Below, piece by piece: positions 1,241 to 32,700 of a stretch of DNA of 64,000 nucleotides. Source of the DNA: Saccostrea echinata (Eukaryota); contig NW_026889756.1 in NCBI RefSeq assembly GCF_033153115.1, positions 2,108,001-2,172,000 of the forward strand, in the 5' to 3' direction. The notes under the pieces are model-generated. The model was given only the letters and a program-made list of their open reading frames with translations, searched no databases and was not told where the DNA came from. Position 1 is the first letter of the stretch; the number at the start of each line of letters is the position of its first letter. Made by a program: the position numbers and the translations under genes.

Positions 1241-2999
1241 AATGATCTAGTAATTCACTTAAAGCACAAATAGTACCTTATTGACAATGAAAAGTCCATA
1301 ATATTTGGTCTCACCTGTAAATCTAACATGGCTAATGGAGAGCTGTGTGTACACTGATATTACATCTGCTTGTTTTGTGGTCATGAGATTTAGGTACTTG
1401 TACATTGGTTGATAGGATAAAATGACTTTTGTTGGTTTCAGCGTGCTACATTACAGATAAATGAGTATAAAGTCGTTGTAAACTATGTAGTATTTGACCA
1501 AATTATCTTTGCAGATATTAAAAAGCACCTTATCTGTAGGTATATTGTTTTATAAGTGGGCAAAAAGTGTCTTTATATGTAGTTGTGTAACAAGACTGTC
1601 TACACTTTTGATGATCTGTTAACTGTATTTTAGAGAAAGATCAATTATTATTGATATTTCCATCAATATAGCGACATATGAAAAACAAATAAATATGTAT
1701 TATAAGAGGATATGCATGATTTAAATAGGTATGATGTGCTTTTGTAAAATGTTCAAACAAATTGTTTTGAAAAATCCCTCTCTTTTGACAGTTATCTTAT
1801 GCAATTATATTCTTTGATTGTTTTTTTTTTGTTTCGTTAAAGATATANNNNNNNNNNNNNNNNNNNNNNNNNNNNNNNNNNNNNNNNNNNNNNNNNNNNN
1901 NNNNNNNNNNNNNNNNNNNNNNNNNNNNNNNNNNNNNNNNNNNNNNNNNNNNNNNNNNNNNNNNNNNNNNNNNNNNNCCATTCTGTGAGAGAAAGAACTA
2001 ATCGAGGGCCGTAGGCTTTTCTCCTACTGAAAACATGATTTCCTTTGTTCTGAAAATTAAATAAAAATGTACAAAATGACAGGTAGCACACAACCAATGA
2101 CAAGTTCATTGTTTACGGAATGGACAGTCACAGGTAAGCTAGTGATGCAGAGCAATTTGTTGAATAGCCATTGTGTTTCCAGATGCAAATAAAAAAAGGT
2201 CTTAAGAATGGACAGTTAAAGGTGGATTTTGTGGGATACTAGTATCTATACAAGTATGCGATGCTTCTATATCAGTTTACAGTTTGCGTTGTAAAGGCAT
2301 ACATGTTTACTTGTGATGGAGAGAGTATATGAAAGAATCAAAATCTAATAAACAAAAATATGCGCAAAATTAATGATATTTAGATCTGGAAACAGAAAAG
2401 TAAGAGTAAAAGAAATACTACCCAAATTTTGACCCAAAAATGAACTTCGACGACAGATACAGATGATCAAATTCGAATCAAACTTGGAAATGTTTTATTT
2501 GAATTCCATTTTTGAAAATATATTAGATGCAAATTCTTTTCTGAGTGTTGGATTAGCCATGAGCCAATCTTCGACCTGAAATGTTTTTCAAATGTTTCAT
2601 TTTTATTTATTTTCTACCGAAATATTAACTGCAGCAGTGTAGTGTTCATGGGGCAAACAGTTTTCTGGGTGGAGGATTTAATATTAGAAGTACTTCTATC
2701 TGAAGTCCTCGAGGGAATGATTTTTACGAAATTGTAATCAAATGTGAAATTGTGTCATTTGAATTCAAGTTTTGTGAAAATTAAGTTTTGAGTATTGAAA
2801 TAATGTGCATTACTCATAGATTTAAAAGAGTAAAATCGAGTGGATGCTGTGCAGATATTGTGTTCTGGATTAACTTTGATCTCCGCGTTCCTTTTGTTAT
2901 TTACATGTAAATTAAAAAGTATCTAATATATCTGTTTTTGTTTCCCTCTTGAACACATTCCAAAGTTTACCTGTAACTCTCCATTCTGTTTGTTTTAAC

Positions 3000-4231: not shown

Positions 4232-4599
4232 NNNNNNNNNNNNNNNNNNNNNNNNNNNNNNNNNNNNNNNNNNNNNNNNNNNNNNNNNNNNNNNNNNNNN
4301 NNNNNNNNNNNNNNNNNNNNNNNNNNNNNNNNNNNNNNNNNNNNNNNNNNNNNNNNNNNNNNNNNNNNNNNNNNNNNNNAACGTCAAGGTCTTTCTTTAC
4401 CTTTGTCCATCAATGTACCCTTTTATCCTATTTCCCTTATTACAACATGACTTTACTGGTAAACAAACATCGAATGTTTGGAAAACTACATAGCCATCAG
4501 ATCAGGAAAGTCTCTAATACGATTTTTGGATCAATCTTTAATTATTTTTGAAGAATCTTAAAATTAAAATGAGAACTCGTATTCATATCTGAAGAGCAA

Positions 4600-8915: not shown

Positions 8916-10164
8916 CAGCATAGTGCCATAAATGAGTCAAATTTTTTAATGGCGTGCAATTATAAGCGCCGCTTCAAAACTTCGAAGTTACGTTGTAGAA
9001 AGAAAAACGATATCATATCGATTTTTTCATGATCAAAGGGAAGTAACGCTTACTGAGTTTTAATTTCCGGATTTTCGTTAGCGAATTTGATTTTGTTATT
9101 ACTCTACTTCCTTGTTTACGAAATGGCAAAACACGGCAATGAAATGTCAGACGACACTATCATAGGGTGCGTTCAGAGTTCTACCAGTAGTACCAACTTT
9201 CAATATACCAATGTTAATGTCAGAGGAGAACGGACACTTTCTCGCCTTGTTAAAAATTCGCGTAGGATAACTTTAAAGGATATAACGGCAGAATTCAACA
9301 ACAGTACACCGGTTAAAGTTTCTCGTCGCACAATACAAAGGACCCTTCACTCCATGGGCTATACAAGGCGATCTTTTCGGAAGTCTGTAGAAATTCGGGA
9401 CGTAAACAAAAAGAAACGCATAGCTTGGTGCAGAGGGAAGTTAGATTGGAATGCCAATAACCACTTGAAAAAGGTGATGTTTTCCGATGAAATGATGGTT
9501 ATTATTAAACCTGACGGAAAGTTTAAAGTATGGAGGAAGTCATCGGAAAAATGGAGACCTGAATGTTTGAGCCACTTTGCACCAATGTAGTCTGCTTTTA
9601 TTAAAATAATGGTATGGGGATGTATCACCTACTATGGGGTAGGAAGTTTAGCATTCATAAATGGAAATATGAACTCTCAGAAATATATCCAAACACTTGA
9701 TGACAATATTTGGCAGGTTGTTGTTGAACATTTTGGTAATAGTACATGGTACTTCCAAGATGACAATGCCCTATGTCATCGGTCCAATGAATCTTAAAAT
9801 TGGAAACATCAGAACAGAATTCACGGATAAGTTGGCCTTCGCAGTCTCCCGATTTGAGCCCAATCGAGAATATTTGGCTATTAATGAAAAACAAAATCAA
9901 AAACAGACTTTACCTGATCCATAATGTAAATGACTTGAAAACTCAGTTACTGAGGTCTTGGAATGAAATCCCTGTATTTTACATTCAAAGACTTTATGCA
10001 AGCCTTCCAAGAAGATGCAGAGAGGTACGGATCCAGAAAGGTGACATCACAAAATATTAGAAGGATTAGAGTTCATTAAAGAGGCTGGTAAGGAATTTAG
10101 GTTGAATTTATATGATTCAAATGGCAGCCATTAAAAAAGTTGACTCATTTATGGCACTATGTTG
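8916..10164 (+). mobile_element. Tc1-family transposon with inactivated DDE transposase
   Basis: TA target duplication (8914-8915, 10165-10166). 38-bp TIRs cagcatagtgccataaatgagtcaa.ttttttaatggc with 2 mismatches. Transposase motifs VSRRTIQRTL, VMFSDE, MVWGCI, FQDDNA, WPSQSPDLSPIENIW are split across ORFs 9087-9590, 9609-9797 and 9800-10060 by a stop and a frameshift. Confidence 0.95.
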
Positions 10165-15979: not shown

Positions 15980-17179
15980 TTATAATCGTTGCAAAACATA
16001 ATATTGAAATATTCCAAAATTGTCAACAGCTGTTGCCACGCACTGCACAACTTTATAGCCTGCAACAGCTCTATAATTAGCGGAGGAGAGGAGCACTGGA
16101 GTGTGTCCAAAAATTATCATATACCCGCCCCTTTTCACGGTTGGAAGAAGAGCAGTCAGCAGATCTTCTGCCTCTGTTGACTTCACGACTTCTGAGTTTA
16201 GAAAACGAACAAAACAGTAATCAGCCGTCCCTGGTTCTATTTTTGGCTCCATGGCATTCCCACAATGCACCTCGTCAACCCTTTGGCGGGAAATTTCCGT
16301 CATCTGCTTACTAAGATCTTGGCCTATTGTATAGCTGTCGGGAAACGCGTTTTTAAGTGTAGACAGGAAAACACCAGTTGAGCAAGCTGGGTCATAGAGT
16401 CTGGCGTTCTTTATTTTAGCGGATGCCATAAATTGAATGGTGTAATCTCTGATTCTTTCTTCACCACAACTCAGCATGACGTCAAAGGCATCATCTATCT
16501 CCCAACCCTGTGGCGGAGAACAGAGCTCCTCGTGTGTCGACTGCCTCAGTAGCGGGTATGGAAAGACTAATTCTGGCATTCCAAAAGAACTGTTCATCAC
16601 TTGGTTCATGAAATACAGTTTTTCTGATTTGTCAAATGGGTAGAAATGCACAATGACTTTGTTTTCGGTTATTCTCTGATCCACAAAGAGGCCAAGGAGC
16701 ATGTCCGCCGAGATGAAACTGCAATAGAGTTCGGGAATCTTGTTTTTGATGAAAAAATCAGAGAGGATTTTTCTTCCCAGAATTTGAACTGGACTTGGCG
16801 TTCCCGGAACAGCAATGTTGAGGTAGAACAATCCCTGGGGCAGCTCAAAGAAACTAACATCTATCCGAGTGATTGGCCTCCGACATACTTCATCCCAGCT
16901 CGCTTCTCTCTTCATGGCAACCCCAGGTTCGATTTTCTGCGCCTTATACCTGACGATCTCGTCTCTGATCGTTGTCAGAGTTTTCTTGTCCCCCACACTC
17001 CGTTCGGATTCTATCAGCGCTTGATTAAGAATATCCTCTGCCTTTTTCCAATCCCCTTTGGAAAGGTTAATCCGAATGTCAGTAAACATTTCCCGAATTT
17101 TCTCATCGTACATATTCTTAAAAATTCCATCGTATGTTGTCACGACTTTTGTAGATTTTAATGCTGGGTCCTTCTCCAT
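15980..17179 (-). CDS. Intronless class I SAM-dependent transferase, Nat/isonocardicin synthase-like 3-amino-3-carboxypropyltransferase (ACT), 399 aa
   Basis: Long uninterrupted ORF. SAM motif I LYDPACSTGVFL, motif II TIGQDLSKQM, then VHCGNA, FVRFLNSEVV, KRGGYMIIFGHTPVLL and terminal IFQYYVL. I recognise this motif series from bacterial proteins annotated as isonocardicin synthase (recall, not a search). Confidence 0.8.
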   Translation of the reverse strand: MEKDPALKSTKVVTTYDGIFKNMYDEKIREMFTDIRINLSKGDWKKAEDILNQALIESERSVGDKKTLTTIRDEIVRYKAQKIEPGVAMKREASWDEVCRRPITRIDVSFFELPQGLFYLNIAVPGTPSPVQILGRKILSDFFIKNKIPELYCSFISADMLLGLFVDQRITENKVIVHFYPFDKSEKLYFMNQVMNSSFGMPELVFPYPLLRQSTHEELCSPPQGWEIDDAFDVMLSCGEERIRDYTIQFMASAKIKNARLYDPACSTGVFLSTLKNAFPDSYTIGQDLSKQMTEISRQRVDEVHCGNAMEPKIEPGTADYCFVRFLNSEVVKSTEAEDLLTALLPTVKRGGYMIIFGHTPVLLSSANYRAVAGYKVVQCVATAVDNFGIFQYYVLQRL

Positions 17180-19926
17180 TATTAGTGTAAAACTTCTTAC
17201 CCTAGTGTGTCCTAGTGGTTGGAAAGGTGAATTATTGATAGCATCTCGCTGTACTTGAGAGATAAGCCACGTTTAGTTTGGAAATTCTGATAACGCCGCT
17301 ATCTGAAATGTGGCCGTGTTTAAATGACGAGATAATGAGGGTCACTCAAGTGTAACATAAACACGTGTAATGCCAGCATGATCATTACCGCAGCACAAGT
17401 CCTGTTGATCATCGTAAGATGGGTATTTCATTTGGTATGTAAACATTATTTTCGGTAATTTAAGCAAATCCTTTGGATAAATGACATACATCTTAACAAA
17501 AAGGGAATGTTATATGAACAGTATTGCAGTCTCCATATGCATTTTATAAAATGTGTCATCTTTCAAGTTATCAAATACAGTTGATATTTCAAACGTAGTA
17601 GTGGCCTGAGACCACTACAATGTCCCATTTTTGATACCCCTCGAAATAGAACATGTGTACTCCAAGGTTCGTGTAGTTTTCTATTTGGTGATGTCAATCT
17701 GCCGCTGGAAAATAATATTACTATCTTTATTTATGTGCAGAAAGATATTGTAGCAACAAGGATGTAAACATATCGATTTTTGTTGTTGTGTTTATGCACT
17801 GCTTATCTCTGCTTTTAACAGTTTAAGCTTAATATGATTATGTACATGATGTAGGAGCAACATCTTAAATTTTCCTTTGTAGTAATATTCTTCAGAATTA
17901 CTTTGAAATGTTTATAGTCTATTTTCAAAAAATATTATGTTGTGCAATTTTTCTTCTCGCATTGATTATTTCTAATTTCATTATATTCAAGTTCTTGTAT
18001 ATACAAGTGATATATATTAAACATGTTAAACTTCATACTTTATTTCCCTGCATTAGGAATACAATCCGTCAAATGTATTTATTCATTGCACAGTACAACT
18101 TTATAAGGGTACATTATTTATCAGTTAACTTACAAAACAAATGAGAAGACGGGTTTGTTTATGTTTCTATTAATGTGCATAGCTTCAATGCTAGTAAATG
18201 TTCTGGTTGACTGTCTTATTACAACTCTCGTGTATATGAACAGCCATTTAAGTGCCTTCAACAGGTTGGAGAGAATGCTCGAAATAGGGTATTATCAGAG
18301 AAATCGCATAATACATGTAAATTGTCCCCGATATCGGAATGTCATTGAATCAGCGAAATCGGGTATCCCGTGCAACTTTTTGTAAAAGCAAGAAAATAAA
18401 GCAAAGGCGCATGATGTCAGTTAGTGTTACTTGTACATCAGTGTCTTGGGGGTTTATTTTCATTGAACCTAATTTGCAGGTTAATCTAAAGAATTCAAAA
18501 TGACACGACTAACACATCTGGGGTAGCATTGAAGTCACGACAGCGTCATTATTTTTCAATGCCATTACCAAAACCAAATGATTACATTTTTTTTTACTTT
18601 ATTTTCTACTGATACATTCCCCAAGCTTCATTTCTAATTTTGTGAATTATTCACAAAGTGTAGAACTTTTAAGAAATTTATTCTATACCTTAAAATGTAT
18701 GGTGTCCCCTTCCCGCTAAAAATCAGACGATGCTAGAAACAATTACAATGTAGTATTGGTTTCCTATCGATATAAAATTATACAGGGACATTCGTAAAGC
18801 AGAAAAATAAAAGATTTTATGCATAGACAAGTGGGTTATGTAAGATTTAAAGACACGCATATATAAAAATCAGATTTTATTATCGGCGGAAGAAGCGATA
18901 GATCTTTATGCTTTGATAGAAAGAGCACATCTAAAAATGGTTTAATGTTTCTATTGAATAACACCTAGTATTAAGTTATTAACAAAAAACCTAATTTTAT
19001 AAAACACACTGCCTTATACTCAATCACATTTTTATGTTTCATGTTGTTTTTTTTTTTTTGGGGGGGGGGGATAACTTCTCATACGATATTCATTAATGAT
19101 TCTTAAGTTTACACTCCCCCCCCCCCTCAAAATGGGATTGCGAAAGATACATAATTTATGCAAATTGCCACTATCCTATTTTTCTATACTTCAAAATATT
19201 TATAAGAATATATTATCTTAGTTACATGTAATATTCCAGTAAATCAATTTATTCATCATACAATGTTTATAAATGTAGAAGCACAGCCCTCACACTCTTT
19301 TTTTTCTGAGAATATACTTTTGCTGTTAATTCTGACCAAAAATATTTATTCAAAGGAAACCCCCTCCCCTCCCCCTTTTTTTTAGTTTTATCTACGCAGC
19401 CCATGTAATTGATCTATATATTTATTTATTTTTAAATAAATTTATTTTTTTCTGCCTGTCAATTTTTAAACCTAACCCTTACAAAAATTCTACTTGTCAA
19501 AATTTCACTCCACCTCTCGAAATAGCTTCTTTCGAGTTTAGCGAGTTTTTATTTAGTGTGTGCGAGCGTGTAAGCCCCCCCCCTCCCCCTCCCCCCCCCC
19601 CCCCCCCCGGCAGAGACTTTTAGAAATTCAAAATGCAAAATACATCGGTCTCACGTCGGGAATGTCCGGTCAACAGAGGATTCTTACTACTCCTAGGCTG
19701 CAGGCACCTGTATTTTATGACCTGTCACAAATATGATATTTTATAAGAATTTTGCGATCAATTACTGTTCATTATCTTTACGTTGTTTATGTACAAATAC
19801 AAGATCTAACACGTTATATCGTTCTTCAACATGTGAGGGTGGGGGTGGAGCTACATGTAGCAATATAATTGACTACTCTCCTAAAAGTCTTTGACATACA
19901 AACATAGAAAAAAATTATTATTGTTA

Positions 19927-21201
19927 AACCCCTGTCACACCGGGACTGCGTCCTCACGGCGATCGCACGGCGTCCATAATAAATGCAAAACGCCGAGGTG
20001 AGCGCAGTAGAGTCTCCTACAGCGCCGTGACAACGCGGCGAGATCTCCTCTGAACGCGGTAGGGTCGCGTAGGGTCTCCTAGAACGCCAGGGGACGGCGC
20101 GCACTTTGGGCATGCACAAAGTACGCGCCGTGTGATCGCCGTCTGGTAAGAACGCAGTAGAAACGTAGTATGATCGCCGTAGCAGCGCGGTGAGATCTCC
20201 AACAACGCAGTGGGAGCTCCGTACGCACGCCGTGAAGACGCACATGATCGCAGCATGGACGCAGTGATAGTAGACTGCGCTTCCACGGAGACCTCGCCGA
20301 GACCTTGGAGATGTCTCGGCGTTTCTATCACGCTTTTACGGCGCTTCTAATGAGATTAATTGTCTTGTGATTTTTTTGACTGCGATTACACAGCGACAAC
20401 AAGGAGTTGTCACTGCGATCATTGCGCTCCCTTGGCGTTTCTACCGCGAACGTTGGCGATCACAATGCGCTTTCACGGCGTTGTTAGAGCGTTGTCAGCC
20501 AGCTCACAAAACAAGAGCAATGGCCTCATATTTGATCAGCAATAATTCTACCGTATTTGTTGCACTCCTGGCCAGGAGCATGGGAGTAGAATTGGGAAGT
20601 AAAAATTATACCAGAACCTGTTCTGTTGTTTCAGTGGAGTTGCGGTGGAATTACTTAAATTTTATAACAACTTTTTAGTGTGTTTATTTTTTACATTCAT
20701 AATAAAATCAATGGAAAAACACATCTGAATTGATATAATTGAAAAAAAAGAAGGGTTTTAATTATAAAACTAACAGTAATTTAGTACTAAATTATTCAAA
20801 TATATCATTTTTTGAAGTATTTTCGTTATGTGACTCGAATCTTTAAAAATAAATGTGTTACACTCCTGAATATATATCCATAGTGAAGAACGCATCTTTG
20901 ACGTATTGTGAACACAGCAAGCGCAGTGAGAACGCCGTGAACGCGAGATGACAACTCCTAACACGCCGTAAAAGCTCCGCGGAAGCGCAGTCAATCGCGA
21001 AGAGATCTCCGTTGGGAACGCAGTAGCCCGCAGCGAGAACGCCGTAGAAACGCGTGGGTCGCCGTAGGGACGCCGTGACATCTTCACATTGTAAAAATTT
21101 TACAGAAATTTGTGTGATTTCCCTGCGATTCCACTGCGATTTTAACATTTTTACAACACCGTAATGACTCCGTGTGGACGCAGCTTGGTGTGACAGGGCC
21201 C
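19927..21201. mobile_element. Non-autonomous TIR DNA transposon (Harbinger- or Kolobok-like), GC-rich arms with AT-rich core
   Basis: Imperfect TIRs ccctgtcacaccgggactgcgtcctcacgg ... ccgtgtggacgcagcttggtgtgacaggg, flanked by TTAA on both sides. Internal sub-repeats cgccgt, acgcagt and gagatctcc. Confidence 0.75.
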
Positions 21202-21696
21202 TTAAAAATTCGGGAAAGTTGGAAATTTCCAGATTTGAAAATAATATTTCGTTGGAGGGGGTGTGTGTCTTCAAACACTATTGATAAGGGAAAAATGAAA
21301 TACATTGGTATGGGGGAATTTGACTATCCTACAAAAAAGTGGGGAAAGCAAATTAGGCAATGTTTATTAATGAATCTTTTTGTGGTATAAATTTACAGTT
21401 AATCATTATGTTTTGGAAAAATTAGAAGGGGGGGGGGGTCATACTACTTGAAAAGTTCGTGTATTGGTATTGGTATTTAGTTCTAGTTCGAAATATTTTA
21501 TCCATTAAATAGTTGATACATTTTGTAATGAATTTGATTTTAAGCAAAATATAAATATGAAAGCAAATAATATATTATATAATATTACATTTTTATACAC
21601 ATATAAATATATTACATATATTATACACACATATTAGGATATGAAAGACAAATCTTTCCCTTCGCTTCGTGTTGACGACCTTTAAAAATTGCTTTC

Positions 21697-22593
21697 ATGC
21701 ATTGGTACTTTTTTATTCTTTGCGTCTTTTTGCTGCTGAAGGTTCTGTATTACTTTTAAATGCTAAAAAAACCCCGGTAGCAATTAAGTGATCTTTACTG
21801 TCCACTATAAATCTGGTTTTTATTTTAATCAGGTTCCTCTCACGAAAGGCTACATACCAGAGCCGGGGAGATTCCTCCGGACTTTACTAACCCTGACGTT
21901 CCATGGTGACAAACTAAAGAAACTCGAGTTCCTTACGGAATACTATTTCTACTATGGACTGTTCAAGTTTGATGCCAAGATTTACATTTTTAATCCGAAA
22001 CTAGCACAGCATGCTATATATAAACTTGAAAAGGGAGCGGAACATTATTTAGAAAATTCACCTTTAAAGAACACGTTCCTTGGATCATCACAGAAAAGTC
22101 CCGAAACAAGGCGCGCTATAGCGTCATTATTCCGAAAAACTTCAATTGAGGAACGCGCTGCTATAATGATAAGCGACATACAGAAAATGTGTACAATATT
22201 CAAGAAAGATCCGAAGGGCATCGTAAACGTCACACAATGGACTCTTCGGATGGCATTGGACATTGTCGGCCATGTCTTACTTGAACTTGATCTTAACGGT
22301 TTGGAAAAGAAGCAAGAGAAAATGATTTCTTCGATGTTGACGATTTTGCATAGATGTTATGCCATGGGAGAAATATCATCAGACAGTAAAGAGTTCTCTG
22401 ACGCAAACGAAGAATTTGATGCCATCACACAAAGGGTTTTAGAGGAAGCACTCAGCATTGATAACGTCACAATTAAGGGAAAACGACTGGTCAACTCACT
22501 GCACGACGCATGCGGATTCAGCGAAGTAAGTATAACATCTCATGCGTTACTTTAAGTTCAGTAACGTGTACATGGCAAAATCTGTATCACACT

Positions 22594-22624
<31 letters not shown>

Positions 22625-24185
22625 GATAGCTCATTTTGATCAAGGGTTGATACTAGTATGGGGTGTGATACAGATTTTTACATGTATTGTTGGGTTATTT
22701 TTATGTATTTGAAAATGATGTCAACAAGTCATGTATAAATGTACCTATAAATGTACTTTTAATAATTTCATGTGTCTTTTTTTTGTTGAATTTCCAACAT
22801 TAATTAGTCCAATGATAATACATTCAGCGATAAGAATAATGAAAATAATTATAATTAAACAAAATAATTATTTTAAATGATATGAAATTAAATTGGAATT
22901 TTAATAAACCTCAAAAACAATAGAAAAGGATCCGATCGAGGTACTCCGAATGAAAAGTACAGAGGTGTTCCAGGAAAGGTGTATTAAAGAGTGAAATAAA
23001 TGGTGATGAAACAGGGTGATGATACAGGGTTCGTGCCTGTGTTCATATCGGGGATGCAAAAAACCTGTATTATATAACAAATATCTAATAAAGTTTTTTT
23101 TAAAAATAAAATGTGATACTGAAATGTGTTCATCTTTCAATTTTTTTTCCTTTCATCTGCTCAGGCCAAAGACAACATGAAATTGTTTTTGATGGCGGGA
23201 ACCGAGACCACCGCCTCTACTATTCCTGTGGTGATGTATCTATTGGTCAAATACCCACATATACAGGTAGAAAGATCAATAAAACTAACCAAGAACAATT
23301 TAAAACATTTCAAATCGCTCATAAAATGTGCCTTTGTTCTCAATACTAGATAGATATGGTGTTATTTGTCAGTTTTTATGTATACATGTAAGTTCTTTTG
23401 AACATAAAACAGGAAGAGTTACGACAGGAAGCGGAAGAGCTCCTTGAATCTTTGGTGGCGGATCCCACCACACCTTTACCTAAGACAGAGAGCGTACTGA
23501 CCGAGGTGCTCCGATTGTACCCGATTGCACCGTTTATCAGCAGACAGAATTACGAGCCGGTAACTCTCGGTGACGTCAACCTGAAACAACATGTAAGTTT
23601 GACTGACAAACAATAATAAAAATATCCCTTTCCCTGGAAAACACTTTAATCCAGTCCTTAAAATAATGATTTTAATATTATATCTATTCAGTGATAAACT
23701 GAAGTCTTACAATTTTTATTCACTTGAGTTAATATAAGGCAGTGCTTAGCCTTCTAAAAATCAGTGATTGATGGAATTAATGTACATTTTTGCATATATT
23801 TACATGATACATCCACCCCTCATGAATTCACACTTCATTTTAGGCTGACGTCATCATATTTACTTGGGGAATTCATCGCAGCCCGCATTATTGGGATAAA
23901 GCAAAGGAATTTGTTCCCTTCCGATTTCTAAACACAAGCAAAACTTCCGGAAATATGTTCATTCCGTTCGGTGCAGGTTCTCGAGTGTGCATTGGACAGC
24001 ATCTGGCTTGGCTGGAACTGAGGCTCGCCGTAGCTATGTTGTTATATCAGTTTAAGTTTGAGCATGCGCAGGAGACACCAGAACTGAATTTTGTGGTAGA
24101 CTGGGCGCATGCTGTTGTGCATCCAGATAAAGACATGATCTTTAAAATTACACCAACACAGAACGACCCCATCACGCTCTCATGA
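21697..24185 (+). CDS. Divergent cytochrome P450, about 453 aa; exons 21697-21741, 21833-22525, 23165-23266, 23413-23592, 23844-24185
   Basis: All introns GT-AG and phase 0. N-terminal hydrophobic anchor MHWYFFILCVFLLLK (exon 1 is the least certain), I-helix AGTETT, ExxR (EVLR), PFRF as a PERF variant, heme motif FGAGSRVCIG. Confidence 0.92.
22577..22678. repeat. Small inverted-repeat element (MITE-like) in a P450 intron
   Basis: aaaatctgtatcacactccata ... tatggggtgtgatacagatttt. Confidence 0.6.
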
Positions 24186-24819
24186 CATTATATAGTGATA
24201 AAATATTGTTATCGTGTTATTTTGATGATGTCAGTGTTTGCTCTTTTTGAGTTTATTGTCTATCTGAATCAGGATTTTGTTAATAAGCGTTTGAATTGTG
24301 AACAGTACATTTAGAGTCAGATTTGATTTAAAAAAAAATACAGCATTTGATGCCACATGACTTGTTCTTATGTTTCTACAAAGTTACACTCTTTCAGATT
24401 GGCACAATTCCCAAAGCTTTATGAAATCCATTGAAATCGGTATACCGAAATAAAGATAATGAATTCAATTAAATTCTTAGACCGACTCTCTTGTTCTAAA
24501 ATATACCCTTAAATATATTTAATATTGAACTGTTTGAAAGGAGCTATGTATATGTGCAACATTCTTTCGTGTGTAAACTTGTGTAAACTTTGCAGAATAG
24601 GATATAGAGAATTTTTAGTAAAGAAACTCCGAAAAAGAAAAGACATTTTCATTTATTTTCAATTTCATAATTTAAAACACAACATATAAAACATGTTAAT
24701 AAGATGTTCAATTCAAAACCCTCACTATAACAATACAAAGAGGAAAAATGTGTCTTCACTGGACGGATTTTCACTTGAAAATAAAGCCTGGTTCACAGTT
24801 TCAGTAAAGTTTTACAGTT

Positions 24820-27800
24820 CTATAATTCTGTATTGCACAAATGGCGCACCATATCGGGGGTTTTTGTTTTGGCTACGAGATCACTCCAATTGTTATATCT
24901 GAAATACACCAAAAAAAGGACTGATCAAAATATAAGTGATAATAGAAATAAAGCAACTATCGATAATTAATGGACATATTCAACAAACCTGGTTTTCGGG
25001 TCTACCGTCATATTGTTGTAATCACTGCACACGGAGGCAGCCATACAGGAACTCAGAAGACTGTATATGGTTTCTCTTTCTGCTAAGACCTCAAGTGGCG
25101 ACATCTCACCGGAAGTCCATTGACGAATCATCCACGCAGCGTCATACGACGAGAGGAAGCCTCGACCACATCCGGTTCCCAATGGCCAGAAAGGCTTTTA
25201 AAAAACGGTTATGAATTGTGAATTTTTTTAAATAATGAGGACATTTTGAGAGTTATTTACAATCAAACTAGTAACTTAAAAATTAACTCCAAGAAATAAT
25301 GCTCATACATATTTTTTTTTCCTTTTTAAAGAAGGCTTGAACTCCATATCAAGCGTTAATACCTTCAGAAAACAACCAATAAACATTTAACATTTTACTT
25401 ACCTCTAACAGGCTATCCCCTACAAGTCCCATTAACAGTTTGTGTCCGTTCCTCACCAGAACACGTGACGCACTCTCAGAATAATACATGGCAGTAAAAT
25501 CAAAGATGGCAACGTCAGGTTCACCTCGATAATTGGTTTCACATTCTAGATCCGGAAGTAGACCGTCTGTACACACTTCCGCTACATTACAGGCGAATTT
25601 GGTTAGTTTTACTTTGTCTATGTTGTCCGGAGCTAATAATGCCTTTGCATTTGGTTGGTTGGATTTTAAAACGCCATTTTTGAGTAAGCTTTGTTTTAAA
25701 GCAGTCATCACAAAATAATGTGTTTCGCCTTTAAAATAAACACAGTTCTCCAGCAGAATGTCTTTCTTGTTCACCAGATTGTGGAAATGCTCAGGTTTTC
25801 CCCATACGGCTAATCCCCCCAGTTCCTGAACCTTGGCCTCTTGGTTTGTATATTTCCGTTTAAAGTTTATGGTAACTGCTATTGCTAGGGGCCCACGTAT
25901 TTCTTTCCGAACAAAACCTGTAGATAAATTTATATTTTTACTTAATAAAGACATGTACAGTTTTGCACAAAAGTAAACTAGATCTTGGTTATCTGGATAT
26001 CAATGAAGTGTAATCCCAGACAATGAATTTGTAAAATGTACTTTTATTTCATACACACCCGGTAGCGTTTCGCCTTTTCCGTCTGCTCCAATAATGACGG
26101 AGAATTGATAATCAGATAAAGGGTGGTCTTCAGGTGTACACCGACATCGCCAACCCACTGTAAGAAAATGAACAAAAAATACTCATCAGTTTGCATTTCT
26201 TGACAACCATGTCTACACTTTAAATTTTCTGAAAACAGTCTCCCAGCACTAGAATGTATCAAAATGTACACAAACATGGTGTCCACAATATTCATTTCAT
26301 TGAATGATAGATGACAAAATCGTATTATTTCGTCAGAATTTTAATGTAAACGCAGTACTTCTACTTTTAATGTAAACATTCCCTGTCATTTTTTTAACAT
26401 AAACCTAAGAATTTATAAATGATTTAACTTAATAGAGATCTTGCATTACTGACTCTACACGAATTTGCTGATCTTACCGTCTGCATTATCAACAGGCGGA
26501 TCCAACAGTCCATCATACGCCACATTTGTGTGCACTTCCACCCCAAGTAACAGCGCAACTTTAAGTAAAATACTTTGTAGTCTCCGGATACCTGATAGAG
26601 AAATCAATAGGTTAATTAGGACTGAAACTAAATCATTGCAATGAATACTGGTGTTTGTGAGCAGCTCCTCCCCCACCCCTTTTACATACATCCCGGTCCC
26701 AGGGAATTTTTAAAGTTGTTTGTTTTAAATTGTTATAGTTTCAAGATTAAAAAAAATAGAAAAATCAGTGAAAAATAATACTTTTTTATTTAAAAAAACA
26801 AACAAACGAACAAAAAACCATGGTGCCCACCATTTGGAAAGGTATACCCCCCTCCCTCAAAGATGAAAACATTTACACTTTGGCAAAGGTGTTTTATTTG
26901 TTTTAAAAAATCAAGTGTGTTAATATAACACAATTTTTACTTACTGATGTGACTTATTCCTCCGACACAAAACTTTGAAAACAATTCCTTTGCTCCTAGA
27001 TTCTTCAGGTCCTCGATGACAAACGGCCAGAGGTGAAGGGTGTTGTGACGGGAAAAAGAACAGCGCTTCTCCATAACAACCACTATGTATCCTAGCAACG
27101 CAACTTCAATGGCGGTTCGAAGGCCACATGGTCCGGCACCAATAACTAAAATCTTTAATAAAAAGTACAAGCATTTAGAAAAGAAATATCTCACGAGCTT
27201 AAAACATAAAAACTGAAAAGAAATGAGGCAGTAAATCACGAATGCTGAATTTGTACGAACGTCGATGAGGACAAGAGAAATAACTATAAAATAGTCGTAA
27301 ACATCCGGAAAATCTGAAGACGTTAAATCACGGTGAAAAACTGCAGGAAACAGTTTTTCGTACACTGGATGGAATTAAAAAGTCATGATGGGGTACAACT
27401 GGTATTAATACTTTTTTACGACCTTCAATAATTTTTCAATTATGATAAAAAAAACTCAATATTTGATGTATTATTACGAAAAAAATCGATCAATAAAATT
27501 TGACAAATATACATGTAAAATGTTGCTGTTGTGCCATAAATATGTTGGTTTCGTTAGCTCATCATGTATTTCCGCTACAATCTGATTATAATTGCATCTT
27601 TTACTTTGTTCCCCAATCGCCTGACATTTTTATTTTATTTTAAAGACATTCCAATATTTCTTTCAAAATGACCCTATGATTCATTCCTGTGATTATAATG
27701 TAAAAATGTATAGATACATAAATAATTAATAAATCGAGTGACATTTTTGTTTTATTTTTAAGAAATTCCAGCATATCTTTCAAAACGAACCTATGATTTA

Positions 27801-28101
27801 TTCAAGTGATTATAATGTAAAAATCTATAGATATAATTATAATTGAATAATTTGTACTTACCTTTGCGTGTTGACAGCCTCGATTGTTCTGAAAGACCTC
27901 AACGTTTCGTTTTCTGGTCAGTTTGCTCAAAAGTGGCCTGGCGCGCCATGACGTCACTTTAGAGGAGAAATGTTCTATCAGCTCCAATCTATTTTTGATG
28001 TTTTTCAAGTCCAGTTCGTAACAGAGGGAATCAAAATATTCCAAAATGTTTCCACAATTGTCTGTTTTCATGAACTTTTCAAAAATCTCGTTTGCATTCA
28101 T
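24820..28101 (-). CDS. MICAL: MICAL-family FAD monooxygenase, monooxygenase domain only, about 486 aa; exons 28101-27862, 27152-26945, 26591-26478, 26157-26059, 25917-25403, 25194-24989, 24898-24820
   Basis: Frame-consistent GT-AG exons give [82 protein letters not shown]...[15 protein letters not shown] on the - strand at about 24652-24657. This is a family assignment, not an orthology call. Confidence 0.9.
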
Positions 28102-29712: not shown

Positions 29713-32700
29713 ATTATTTTGATTTTTATGTAACGCAATAAGTCGTTGAAATATTAAACCGAGAAACATTATGCCATCTATTAAATACGATTGTTATGAA
29801 AGTATTTCATTATAGAGGAGAAAAAATATTCATGAAAATTTGACTATATTCTAATAGTAAGAAAAACGAAATTTAGTTAAAAAATTACTGTTACTTTTTA
29901 AATTATTTTGAATCTTGAAACTTTCAGGGGGCCCAATTTACTCCAAATGTGCCCCAGCTGGGGCCCCTTTATCTATACAATGCGATACCTGGAGCATCAT
30001 CTACGTTAGGCAAACAATGTACTCCGAGTACTACGGTGTTCCGAATGTCAACTGTCAGCTTCCCTCCTACAACACCCTCTGTCACACCTTTAGTAACACC
30101 TCGGACTTCTACTTCAACGGTAAATATAGGGCGGAACACACATTTACATCCGAAAGGCTGGCAGCGGTGGGTCAGACATTCGGTCTGGGCTGTAACTATT
30201 CGTCTACTGTCAAAGTGGTCCAGATACTGTACGAGTGTCTCACAGGTAAGCTCATGTGACTCAAATCCATCAATCTAAAAGCAACCTTAAATTTTAAAAT
30301 TTAAAAAAAAAATCAGTCATGGGATGTTTTTTGAAAAAAAGATTTTTTTTTTATTTTCATTGAAAATCACCAAAAATATTTCAAGGATAGATTTTTAGGC
30401 AATACATGTATTAATCAAACTACTTTTACATGTTCTTTCCTTTTATTGGATTCATTTTTTGTCATCTCCCTCGGGAGATGACACATTAAGTTTGAATCAC
30501 CGGAAGTAAAGTCCTACAGTAAGCTGCCATTGATAAGCTGGTGGTCTGACTGACGATGACACGATTTCTAAATATAGAGATGTAAACAAAATTGACCAAA
30601 GTCTGTCTTATTATTATTAAACAAAATGGTCCATCTTAAAGTTAAAGTAAAACTACATCAGTGTTCATTCAGAGTAATAGAGGTAGGATCACTTGGGTGG
30701 TGGTGGGTCTTCTTTAACGGTTTATATACATAAACATTGCATCTAGGCTATTGCGTAAAACGATGGTCAGCGCGCGGGGATCAAAATAGCATATTGAATG
30801 TATAAGCCAAGGCGTGGATCCAAGATTTACTGACGAAAGAAAACAGTGAAAATATTTAAATGACAACTCACATTAAATGCATATATACAATGGCAAAAAC
30901 TTTACTTTTATGAGCACTTTAGTCAATCGATAATTAATGCCGTATATATGAAAAATAAAACAGAACTTATTCAAAAAAAAAAAATAAATAAATAATAAAG
31001 TTGGAAGAAAAGAAATTTTACCTAAAAGCACAATTTAGGCAGAAACATAATTATAAATGTCTCTGATTTAAGTAACTCAGTGCTGCAGGCATTGGAATAA
31101 AGATCATAAAGAATCATTATGAGTATTTTCTCGGATGTGTGCACTATATTCTTTTTACCCCTGTATAAAAGTATTAGGAAAATATACAGTTTTCTTTACC
31201 TGGCTCAGATTTTAAGAGTTAATAAACAAAGCAACTGTTTTCATATTCTCTATGCAATTCTAATTTGCGTTTTTTGTCAATGAGAAAAGGTAAAAAAAAA
31301 AATCACTCCTCGTATTCTTGAAACAAAGCCAAAATTATAAAATGTGTGTCTCATGGAACAGCCTATAAAATCGATGTTGGTAGATTGGGGTTCTTTTCGA
31401 TGTGTTAATACTTAATTTTAAATGGTATCGTTTCAATTTTATAATTACCTTTCTATGCATGATTTTTTTCCAAGAGCGTATACATGTACATGTACATGTA
31501 CTTATATTATACATAATATAGCGTTAGAACATGAATCTGAATGGGCAGCAGAAGGGCATGATGCAGGAGTGTCTCAATTTTTCCCTTGATATTCCCAGTG
31601 GCTCGATGGCCAAGTCACTTCAGAGGATACGATTAAGGAAAATAAGGAAAGTCTTGGAACTAATTCAGGTTCAGATTAATTTAAGTTGGCGCTTTAAAAC
31701 TTCTTTGCTGCCGTGGTAGGCGGCTAAGAACTAAAGTCAAAAGGAACGCTAAGTTTTTATCCATCTTCTTTCGGAATAATTGTTAAAGCTATATATGGCG
31801 TATCTGAGCTAAAAAATAAAAATACGAGATTGGGTGAAGCTAAACATTATGTATGTTATTTACGTTGAAATTAAATTTTTCACCGATTTTGAACTTGAAT
31901 AACCTCATGTTTCCATAGTTCGACTGATTAAAAAAAAAAAAATTAAACTGTGTCTGTTAATTAAAATCTGAATCGGTAAATAAATCGGTTTTTGCTTTAA
32001 ATTTCTAATATCTTTGAAACGTGATTGATTTAAATTGTGTAATTTACAGGAAAGTCCTATTTTTATATAAAGTAATAAAACAAATAGAAAGATCTTTTNN
32101 NNNNNNNNNNNNNNNNNNNNNNNNNNNNNNNNNNNNNNNNNNNNNNNNNNNNNNNNNNNNNNNNNNNNNNNNNNNNNNNNNNNNNNNNNNNNNNNNNNNN
32201 NNNNNNNNNNNNNNNNNNNNNNNNNNNNNNNNNNNNNNNNNNNNNNNNNNNNATTCTTACGAATATTTCTCAGTGGTTAGAATTTTTTACAGACATTGTA
32301 CAAAATATATTTAAACCGAATAAAGCATATTTACAACAGGTAAAATAATACAGGTACATAGCACCAGGAGGGCCGTCCCCTTCCACTTTTTTCCCCAAAC
32401 ATTGAAAAGGCGCACCCTTGACCCCTCTTCCACCTTTTGTTGCAGTATGGTACGTCAAATCATCCCATGAGAATGTATTATAACATAAAATATGTTTGTC
32501 GGAAAAGTTGTAATCCCTTCTTCCAAGAAATGAAAATGTTGAGTTTGGATAGCCCCTTTTTCCCCTTGTCAAAGATTGTTCAGAAAAATCGTCGATTTTT
32601 TTGTCCTCCACCCCCCCCCCCCCATTTTTTCAAAAGCGATACTACTGCCTGTAATAGCTGAGAAAACAAGCATTCTGAGAGTATTGCATTAGCAATACTA

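Follow-up and report, generated by a model that had tools for sequence, protein, structure and literature searches.

The stretch of DNA described here, called the window, comprises 64,000 nucleotides of the oyster Saccostrea echinata (NCBI RefSeq assembly GCF_033153115.1, 923 Mb in 425 contigs) and corresponds to positions 2,108,001-2,172,000 of contig NW_026889756.1, designated C7. Between positions 15980 and 28101 of the window there are three enzyme genes, which are intact and not homologous to one another: an aminocarboxypropyltransferase (ACT) gene, act, a cytochrome P450 gene, p450, and a gene for a flavin monooxygenase of the MICAL type. The part from 15980 to 24185 is very probably (a probability of roughly 0.85) the act–p450 half of the bursatellin/oxazinin (bur-ox) pathway of molluscs, with the MICAL-type gene as a neighbour and not as an established member. 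The act and p450 genes lie head to head with 198 bp between their start codons, and p450 and the monooxygenase gene lie tail to tail with 634 bp between their stop codons, their 3' ends coming within about 280 bp of each other. An earlier note, made from the letters alone, had described three consecutive intact enzyme genes, of which the first two diverge and the third converges on the P450 gene; open reading frames (ORFs), spliced contigs, domain matches and the two spacings bear this description out. The gene models are based on the contigs of four public runs (X1-X4) with GT..AG joints, and because of these joints the contigs are considered to derive from spliced RNA. Database searches were performed exon by exon or with the database proteins P0121 and P0420, and joined translations were used solely in local frame checks, in estimates of the ratio of nonsynonymous to synonymous substitution rates (dN/dS), in pairwise identities and in trees.

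The bur-ox pathway, which the earlier note had brought up, is real and has been published (Venugopalan & Schmidt, J Am Chem Soc 2025, PMC11869996), so the locus is not the new candidate cluster for which it had been taken. According to that paper, the pathway is encoded by one cluster made up of an fmt-atr nonribosomal peptide synthetase (NRPS) gene, act, p450 and two flavin monooxygenase (FMO) genes, the fmos, in mussels, oysters and other molluscs, and species with 'partial/full machinery' are allowed for. ACT activity was shown for the enzyme of Mytilus californianus and a four-electron reduction for the T-R didomain of the NRPS of Crassostrea virginica; the roles of the P450, to introduce a hydroxyl group, and of the Fmos, to form a nitrile, are predictions. 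In the same paper, the published ACT is promiscuous and accepts many substrates, some molluscs (limpets) have ACT without the NRPS, the bivalve P450 is called globular, and the fmos are described as 'homologous to other animal Fmos', the kind of flavoenzyme being unspecified.

The act gene (15980-17179, minus strand) is intronless and encodes an isonocardicin-synthase-like protein of 399 amino acids, which carries a class I S-adenosylmethionine (SAM)-methyltransferase-type domain (Pfam Methyltransf_25). A search of the PDB gave a sole strong solved relative, isonocardicin synthase Nat of nocardicin biosynthesis (8zhu, E 6.6e-39), residues 114-398 of the oyster protein being matched to residues 49-325 of the 326-residue chain, that is, over nearly the whole of Nat, and the mollusc ACT has an additional N-terminal region of about 110 amino acids. 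Nat transfers a 3-amino-3-carboxypropyl group from SAM to a phenol, as the window ACT would do by analogy, and each is accompanied by a P450, although the acceptor is a tyrosinol in the bur-ox pathway and a β-lactam peptide for Nat. In the databases, the window ACT has its relatives among bivalves and gastropods; these proteins are about 400 amino acids long, several are named 'isonocardicin synthase-like', and the identities are 80% for close relatives, 47-60% over the bivalve orders and in Haliotis, and 50-80% for the bivalve orthologs.

In the tree of these proteins, from which the sequence of the characterised Mytilus californianus ACT is absent, there are two mollusc clades, A and B, each with 99% support in the Shimodaira–Hasegawa-like approximate likelihood ratio test (SH-aLRT) and each including bivalves and gastropods. 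Clade A contains the window ACT, Potamilus_024261, Tegillarca_012996 and a copy on an ENA contig of 133 kb, the P450 partners of which are found on the same contigs. Clade B contains a second intronless ACT gene of S. echinata (C4:1,483,107-1,484,255, plus strand, locus L002), which has an open frame of 447 amino acids and 39% identity to the window ACT; further members include copies of Pinctada, Mizuhopecten, Potamilus, Pomacea, Batillaria and Patella. As judged from these sequences, the duplication into clades A and B is older than the split of bivalves and gastropods, and the clade B enzyme may be the ACT without NRPS reported in limpets. In addition, two distinct clade A ACTs (protein clusters P0039 and P0044) are found together on ENA contigs of 2,092,994, 2,326,995, 4,343,486 and 545,567 bases; because the two clusters co-occur on contigs in several ENA assemblies, ACT is tandemly duplicated in some bivalves.

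The p450 gene on the plus strand has five exons and encodes 457 amino acids. Its coding exon 1 (17378-17434) encodes a hydrophobic leader of 19 amino acids, MIITAAQVLLIIVRWVFHL, with a mean hydropathy of 1.97; it was located through the loose 5' end of the spliced P450 contigs, whose letters preceding position 21832 map uniquely to 17407-17433, and it has an in-frame ATG at 17378, a GT donor after 17434 and a frame continuous with that of the following exon. Exon 2 (21833-22525) is present in contigs of all four runs and has an AG acceptor and a GT..AG joint, 22525/23165, to exon 3 (23165-23266), which contains the I-helix motif AGTETT and is defined by contig joints (cut +4) and canonical splice sites. 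Exon 4 (23413-23592), with the ExxR motif as EVLR, and exon 5 (23844-24185), which encodes the haem-binding loop FGAGSRVCIG and includes the stop codon, are likewise supported by contigs, splice sites and motifs, and the 3' untranslated region (UTR) extends to at least 24355. The P450 motifs are complete (AGTETT at residue 261, EVLR at 315 and FGAGSRVCIG at 386), and the ORF at 21788-22555, which the earlier note had reported as the P450, proved to be a P450 sequence that covers part of one exon of a five-exon gene. In the first intron, 4.4 kb in length, neither tandem nor dispersed repeats were found.

The Pfam p450 match of exon 2 alone is weak and this exon gave nothing in a search of the PDB; the last exon is best matched there by CYP17, CYP97, CYP3A and BM3, namely eukaryotic class II P450s and BM3. 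Like NocL, the P450 of the nocardicin pathway, the window P450 accompanies an ACT, any closer relationship between the two being hypothetical. A bur-ox P450 would be expected to be bacteria-like and to have no N-terminal membrane anchor. All 16 database matches of the exon-2 frame are molluscan, and over 437 amino acids the protein is 84% identical to LOC125676234 of Ostrea edulis and 75.5% identical to K1PLS9 of Magallana gigas. The transcript-supported start adds the 19-residue leader to what the published work regards as a globular P450, and the leader is absent from the annotated orthologs of Ostrea, Magallana and Mya; it may serve as a membrane anchor or represent an alternative 5' exon. 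A loose contig end at 24174 in run X2 starts like ubiquitin and was taken as an assembly chimera. The contig depth of p450 is 434 in run X2 versus 13 in X1, 19 in X3 and about 2-6 in X4, X1, X2 and X4 being listed as a single sample; this spread may reflect strongly tissue- or condition-dependent expression, and contig depths cannot rank genes. A second P450 copy of the bur-ox type, about 80% identical, is found at C16:9585466-9594385 (plus strand, loci L024 and L034-L036); its large exon is split into three frames by stop codons and its last exon is open, and it is probably a pseudogene.

In five other bivalve assemblies, too, act and p450 are linked, either by a shared contig or by near-consecutive locus tags. 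This linkage was read indirectly, by comparing the protein matches of ACT and P450, the latter obtained with the exon-2 frame, by contig and locus-tag order. In Potamilus, the P450 (CHS0354_024259) and the ACT (CHS0354_024261) lie on the same contig of 420,547 bases, in Tegillarca the two have the near-consecutive tags KUTeg_012993 and KUTeg_012996, respectively, and both are present on each of three ENA contigs of 133,081, 4,274 and 582,559 bases. Overall, the linkage extends over Ostreida, Arcida and Unionida, plus further assemblies. Because the P450 orthologs adjoin clade A ACTs in these other assemblies, the act–p450 pair can be regarded as a conserved linkage unit. In S. echinata, the spacer between the two start codons (17180-17377, 198 bp) begins directly after the ATG of act, which ends at 17179, and ends directly before the ATG of p450 at 17378, and one P450 contig (run X3, record 7) extends 13 bases upstream of the latter into the spacer. 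From its position the spacer is presumed to be a bidirectional promoter, and since it is common to both genes, act and p450 are probably co-regulated.

These findings bear on the explanation that three unrelated genes have merely come to lie side by side by chance, with no common pathway. Adjacent genes in animals are usually unrelated, and the third gene is tied to the other two by position only; for act and p450, however, such an explanation is contradicted by a linkage conserved across Ostreida, Arcida, Unionida and the further assemblies, and the two also share the head-to-head spacer. As an account of the locus, chance is therefore scarcely credible. The linkage in other molluscs, which the earlier note had suggested examining for all three genes, holds for act and p450 in the five bivalve assemblies, whereas the adjacency of the monooxygenase gene was observed in S. 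echinata only, as far as its best 120 database matches go.

The other components of the bur-ox pathway are present elsewhere in the genome. The search for a monomodular Fmt-A-T-R NRPS led to contig C9, where a single open frame of 1595 amino acids (53,402,978-53,407,762, minus strand) contains the domains Formyl_trans_N, AMP-binding, AMP-binding_C, PP-binding and NAD_binding_4. An intact two-exon gene for a classical FMO (PF00743), the best-scoring one of the genome, lies on the same contig at 53,433,524-53,435,234, 25.8 kb from the NRPS, and between the two, at a distance of 18.9 kb from the NRPS, there is a decayed FMO copy (53,426,626-53,428,536, plus strand, locus L042), whose colinear matches to the hidden Markov model contain 12 in-frame stops. 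In S. echinata, one bur-ox fmo of the two thus seems to be decayed, and the classical FMOs on C9, and not the window enzyme, probably correspond to the published fmos. ACT homologs were found in the genome on C7 (the window) and C4 only, and members of the P450 lineage on C7 (the window) and as the decayed copy on C16 only, neither being near the NRPS; C9 and C7 would place the NRPS at least about 3 Mb from act and p450 even if the contigs abutted. The bur-ox pathway is therefore split in S. echinata into an act–p450 pair on C7 and an NRPS–FMO group on C9.

Compared with bur-ox in Mytilus galloprovincialis and other molluscs, S. echinata has the same gene families, namely an ACT, a nearby P450, an FmtATR NRPS and flavin monooxygenases, but act and p450 are on C7 and fmt-atr and the classical FMOs, one of them decayed, are on C9; in addition, the P450 gene is abutted by a MICAL-type monooxygenase-only gene, which is not mentioned in PMC11869996. 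The proposal that the locus belongs to this pathway is thus supported, the window ACT being in the P450-linked clade A and the gene set being present in the genome, and of the two alternatives in the earlier note, a split or an NRPS-free version, the former applies and the latter does not. If the S. echinata enzymes act as their counterparts do, the FmtATR NRPS on C9 would be expected to convert tyrosine, by activation, N-formylation and reduction, into N-formyl-tyrosinol; the window ACT would then move the 3-amino-3-carboxypropyl group from SAM onto the phenol oxygen to give a homoserine ether; and the P450 and the classical FMO or FMOs near the NRPS are candidates for benzylic hydroxylation and for conversion of the amino-acid end into a nitrile. 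All these activities in S. echinata, as well as the roles of the oxygenases, are inferred from analogy.

The separate position of the NRPS can also be explained by assuming that the act–p450 pair makes a product other than bursatellin or oxazinin, with a different acceptor and independently of FmtATR. The broad substrate range of the ACT, the molluscs that have ACT without the NRPS (PMC11869996) and the second, ancient ACT clade, which implies more than one role for the family, are in line with this explanation. On the other hand, the window ACT shares its clade with the P450-linked copies, the genome retains FmtATR together with an intact neighbouring FMO, and the FmtATR for which biochemistry was published came from another oyster, C. 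virginica, so that a different product appears quite improbable.

The monooxygenase gene on the minus strand has seven exons, from the ATG at 28101 to the stop codon at 24820-24822, and encodes 486 amino acids. Exon 1 (27866-28101) is open and 88% identical to exon 1 of a paralog described below; its boundary was taken from a paralog contig, the loose end of which behind 27156 maps to 27866-27895. Exon 2 (26942-27156), which encodes the flavin adenine dinucleotide (FAD)-binding motif GAGPCG, has transcript support solely from paralog contigs. Exon 3 (26478-26588) is defined by contig joints including those of a near-identical contig (run X1, record 3), which also covers exon 4 (26057-26157) with the GADG motif; exon 5 (25403-25915) contains the Rossman_Mical core (Pfam PF25413, 3.7e-42) and is bounded by contig joints; exon 6 (24989-25194), with PFWPLGTG, is covered by record 2 of run X1, no other letters being read on this exon; and exon 7 (24820-24898), with the stop codon, is supported by the joint 24898/24989 and by unspliced contigs reaching to 24707 and 24637, the 3'UTR extending down to at least 24637. 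A stop codon at 24967-24969 was rejected, for it falls inside an intron of 90 bp. Near-identical transcripts of the window gene (records 2 and 3 of X1) thus cover exons 3-7 only, and none was seen over exons 1-2 in the four runs.

RefSeq models the window gene as XP_061171065.1, 'F-actin-monooxygenase mical1-like', a protein of 340 amino acids that begins within an intron, with the ATG at 26821 (MVFC...), and lacks exons 1-2 and, with them, the GAGPCG motif, and whose terminal residues are the same as those of the model based on contigs. This model is probably truncated, because exons 1-2 are open and conserved (dN/dS 0.097). The encoded protein is a complete MICAL-type monooxygenase domain with intact GxGxxG (GAGPCG) and GADG motifs, and its stop codon comes about 30 residues past the domain, so that the CH, LIM and bMERB domains are absent; beyond the stop, the contigs run unspliced into the 3'UTR and the further DNA is taken up by the P450 gene. 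Compared with MICAL1-3 and Drosophila Mical, which are F-actin methionine monooxygenases and oxidise Met44 and Met47 of actin, it has the same complete monooxygenase domain including the GD and PFWP motifs but lacks the other three domains, and it lies on a long branch apart from the canonical MICAL of the oyster itself. The monooxygenase domains of MICALs have a fold in common with phenol hydroxylases of the p-hydroxybenzoate-hydroxylase type.

Three MICAL-type domains are found in the genome, all of them on C7. The best-scoring one lies at 1.99 Mb, at a distance of 147 kb from the window, and belongs to a canonical MICAL with a short branch among the multi-domain MICALs. The other is a gene-sized duplicate of the window gene at C7:4,576,348-4,581,907 (plus strand, loci L043-L046, RefSeq XP_061171200.1, 485 amino acids), 2.45 Mb from the window copy and 83% identical to it including introns; neither act nor p450 is beside it. 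The seven exons of the two copies align without gaps (92.4% identity in nucleotides and 93.6% in protein), with a dS of 0.28, and the dN/dS of 0.097 between them indicates that the full frame of 486 amino acids is under purifying selection in both. At every one of the 32 listed variant positions, the divergent contigs of runs X3 and X4 have the letter of the paralog, and because of this the paralog is considered to be transcribed in full length. Loose contig ends at 24825 and 24785 were rejected as splicing of the window gene, since they do not map in the window and their contigs agree with the paralog at 32/32 of these positions. Transcripts of the paralog splice, just before the position of the stop codon of the window copy, into a further exon. 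When superposed on the monooxygenase domains of canonical MICALs, the Atlas model for this paralog reaches a template modelling (TM) score of 0.96 over 480 residues.

With canonical MICALs, from all animal phyla and also from the oyster itself, the window monooxygenase shares about 50-54% identity, and the sole closer relative is P0271, a transcript-derived protein of 503 amino acids with 57% identity and the same end point. In the tree, it belongs to a long-branch group of short proteins (about 460-545 amino acids; P0274, P0239, P0293, P0294, P0305, P0298 and P0271) which end right after the monooxygenase domain and come from Patella vulgata, Lottia, the chiton Liolophura, a sea cucumber, Nematostella and krill; the group is separated from the canonical MICALs with 93% support, long-branch attraction being possible. 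From these sequences, the short MICAL-like proteins may be an old monooxygenase-only family. No literature on monooxygenase-only MICAL proteins in molluscs was found. Among the best 120 matches of the window monooxygenase, there is neither a named ortholog from an oyster or other bivalve nor a match on a contig that holds both ACT and P450.

It has to be considered whether the three genes of the window are one functional unit, in which a monooxygenase-only MICAL paralog would have been taken over by the Saccostrea lineage to serve as a tailoring oxidase on the tyrosinol ether. The monooxygenase gene is tightly packed against p450, tail to tail; the enzyme is complete and catalytically plausible, as suggested by the intact FAD motifs and the model of the paralog; the dN/dS of 0.097 relative to the paralog points to strong purifying selection; and since monooxygenases make up a small share of genes, adjacency by chance would be uncommon a priori. 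However, the paralog at 4.58 Mb of C7 is transcribed without act or p450 at its side, and the monooxygenase-only proteins nearest to the enzyme are those of animals for which bur-ox is unreported, namely limpets, a chiton, a sea cucumber, Nematostella and krill. Furthermore, ACT and P450 have orthologs of 75-84% identity in Ostrea and Magallana, whereas the best 120 matches of the monooxygenase gave no named bivalve ortholog and no contig shared with ACT and P450. The depth of p450 contigs varies from 2-6 to 434 over the four runs, as against about 5 for the monooxygenase in the two runs showing it, which is a weak measure, and the chemistry of bursatellin requires no ring hydroxylation (PMC11869996). 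Such a three-gene unit is accordingly unlikely, as is, to the same degree, any membership of the MICAL-type gene in the bur-ox pathway; that the paralog became part of the act–p450 sub-cluster within the Saccostrea lineage and has the tyrosinol ether as its substrate is a little more doubtful still. The 'stand-alone flavin monooxygenase', which the earlier note had proposed as a possible oxidase of the pathway, probably differs from the published fmos, being derived from MICAL and tied to the pathway by adjacency solely, with classical FMOs present beside the NRPS.

The assignment of 15980-24185 to the bur-ox pathway, with the MICAL-type gene as a neighbour, has some points against it. The NRPS is unlinked to act and p450 in the assembly, so that the word 'cluster' applies only to the pair. 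The chemistry of the product and the activity of the enzymes in S. echinata are inferred, and because the published ACT is promiscuous (PMC11869996), its acceptor in this oyster is uncertain. Transcript evidence covers the P450 and monooxygenase genes only, act being represented by an intact ORF. The same paper leaves open of which kind of flavoenzyme the fmos are, and their equation with the classical FMOs on C9 is a presumption. Moreover, chance alone would seldom place a monooxygenase directly 3' of the P450, and its exclusion from the pathway could be wrong.

As for the surroundings, a fragment of a Tc1/mariner-type transposase (HTH_Tnp_Tc3_2, 2.9e-16) is found upstream of ACT at 9087-9590 of the window (plus strand), and an open frame of 366 amino acids resembling, by eye, a DDE transposase lies at C9:53392849-53393946 (plus strand), about 9 kb from the NRPS; both sub-loci, that of the act–p450 pair and that of the NRPS, are thus flanked by mobile elements. 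Runs of N in the window (1848-1977, 4232-4379 and 32099-32252) are all outside the three genes.

Biosynthetic gene clusters encoded by animals are rare, and bur-ox belongs to the few that have biochemical support. Since the system has already been published, the S. echinata locus adds an oyster example and the published picture is unchanged; the example is well resolved, with gene models defined by transcripts. It gives evidence that the pathway is separable into an act–p450 pair, with a promoter region that is presumably shared, and an NRPS–FMO group, and that the pair is a linkage unit conserved across bivalve orders. In addition, two leads outside the published work have emerged, namely the second ancient mollusc clade of ACTs and the putative monooxygenase-only MICAL family. 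If the recruitment of the MICAL-type enzyme were true, it would be the first small-molecule biosynthetic role for a flavoenzyme of this type, and an animal gene cluster would have gained a member from the catalytic domain of a cytoskeletal enzyme.

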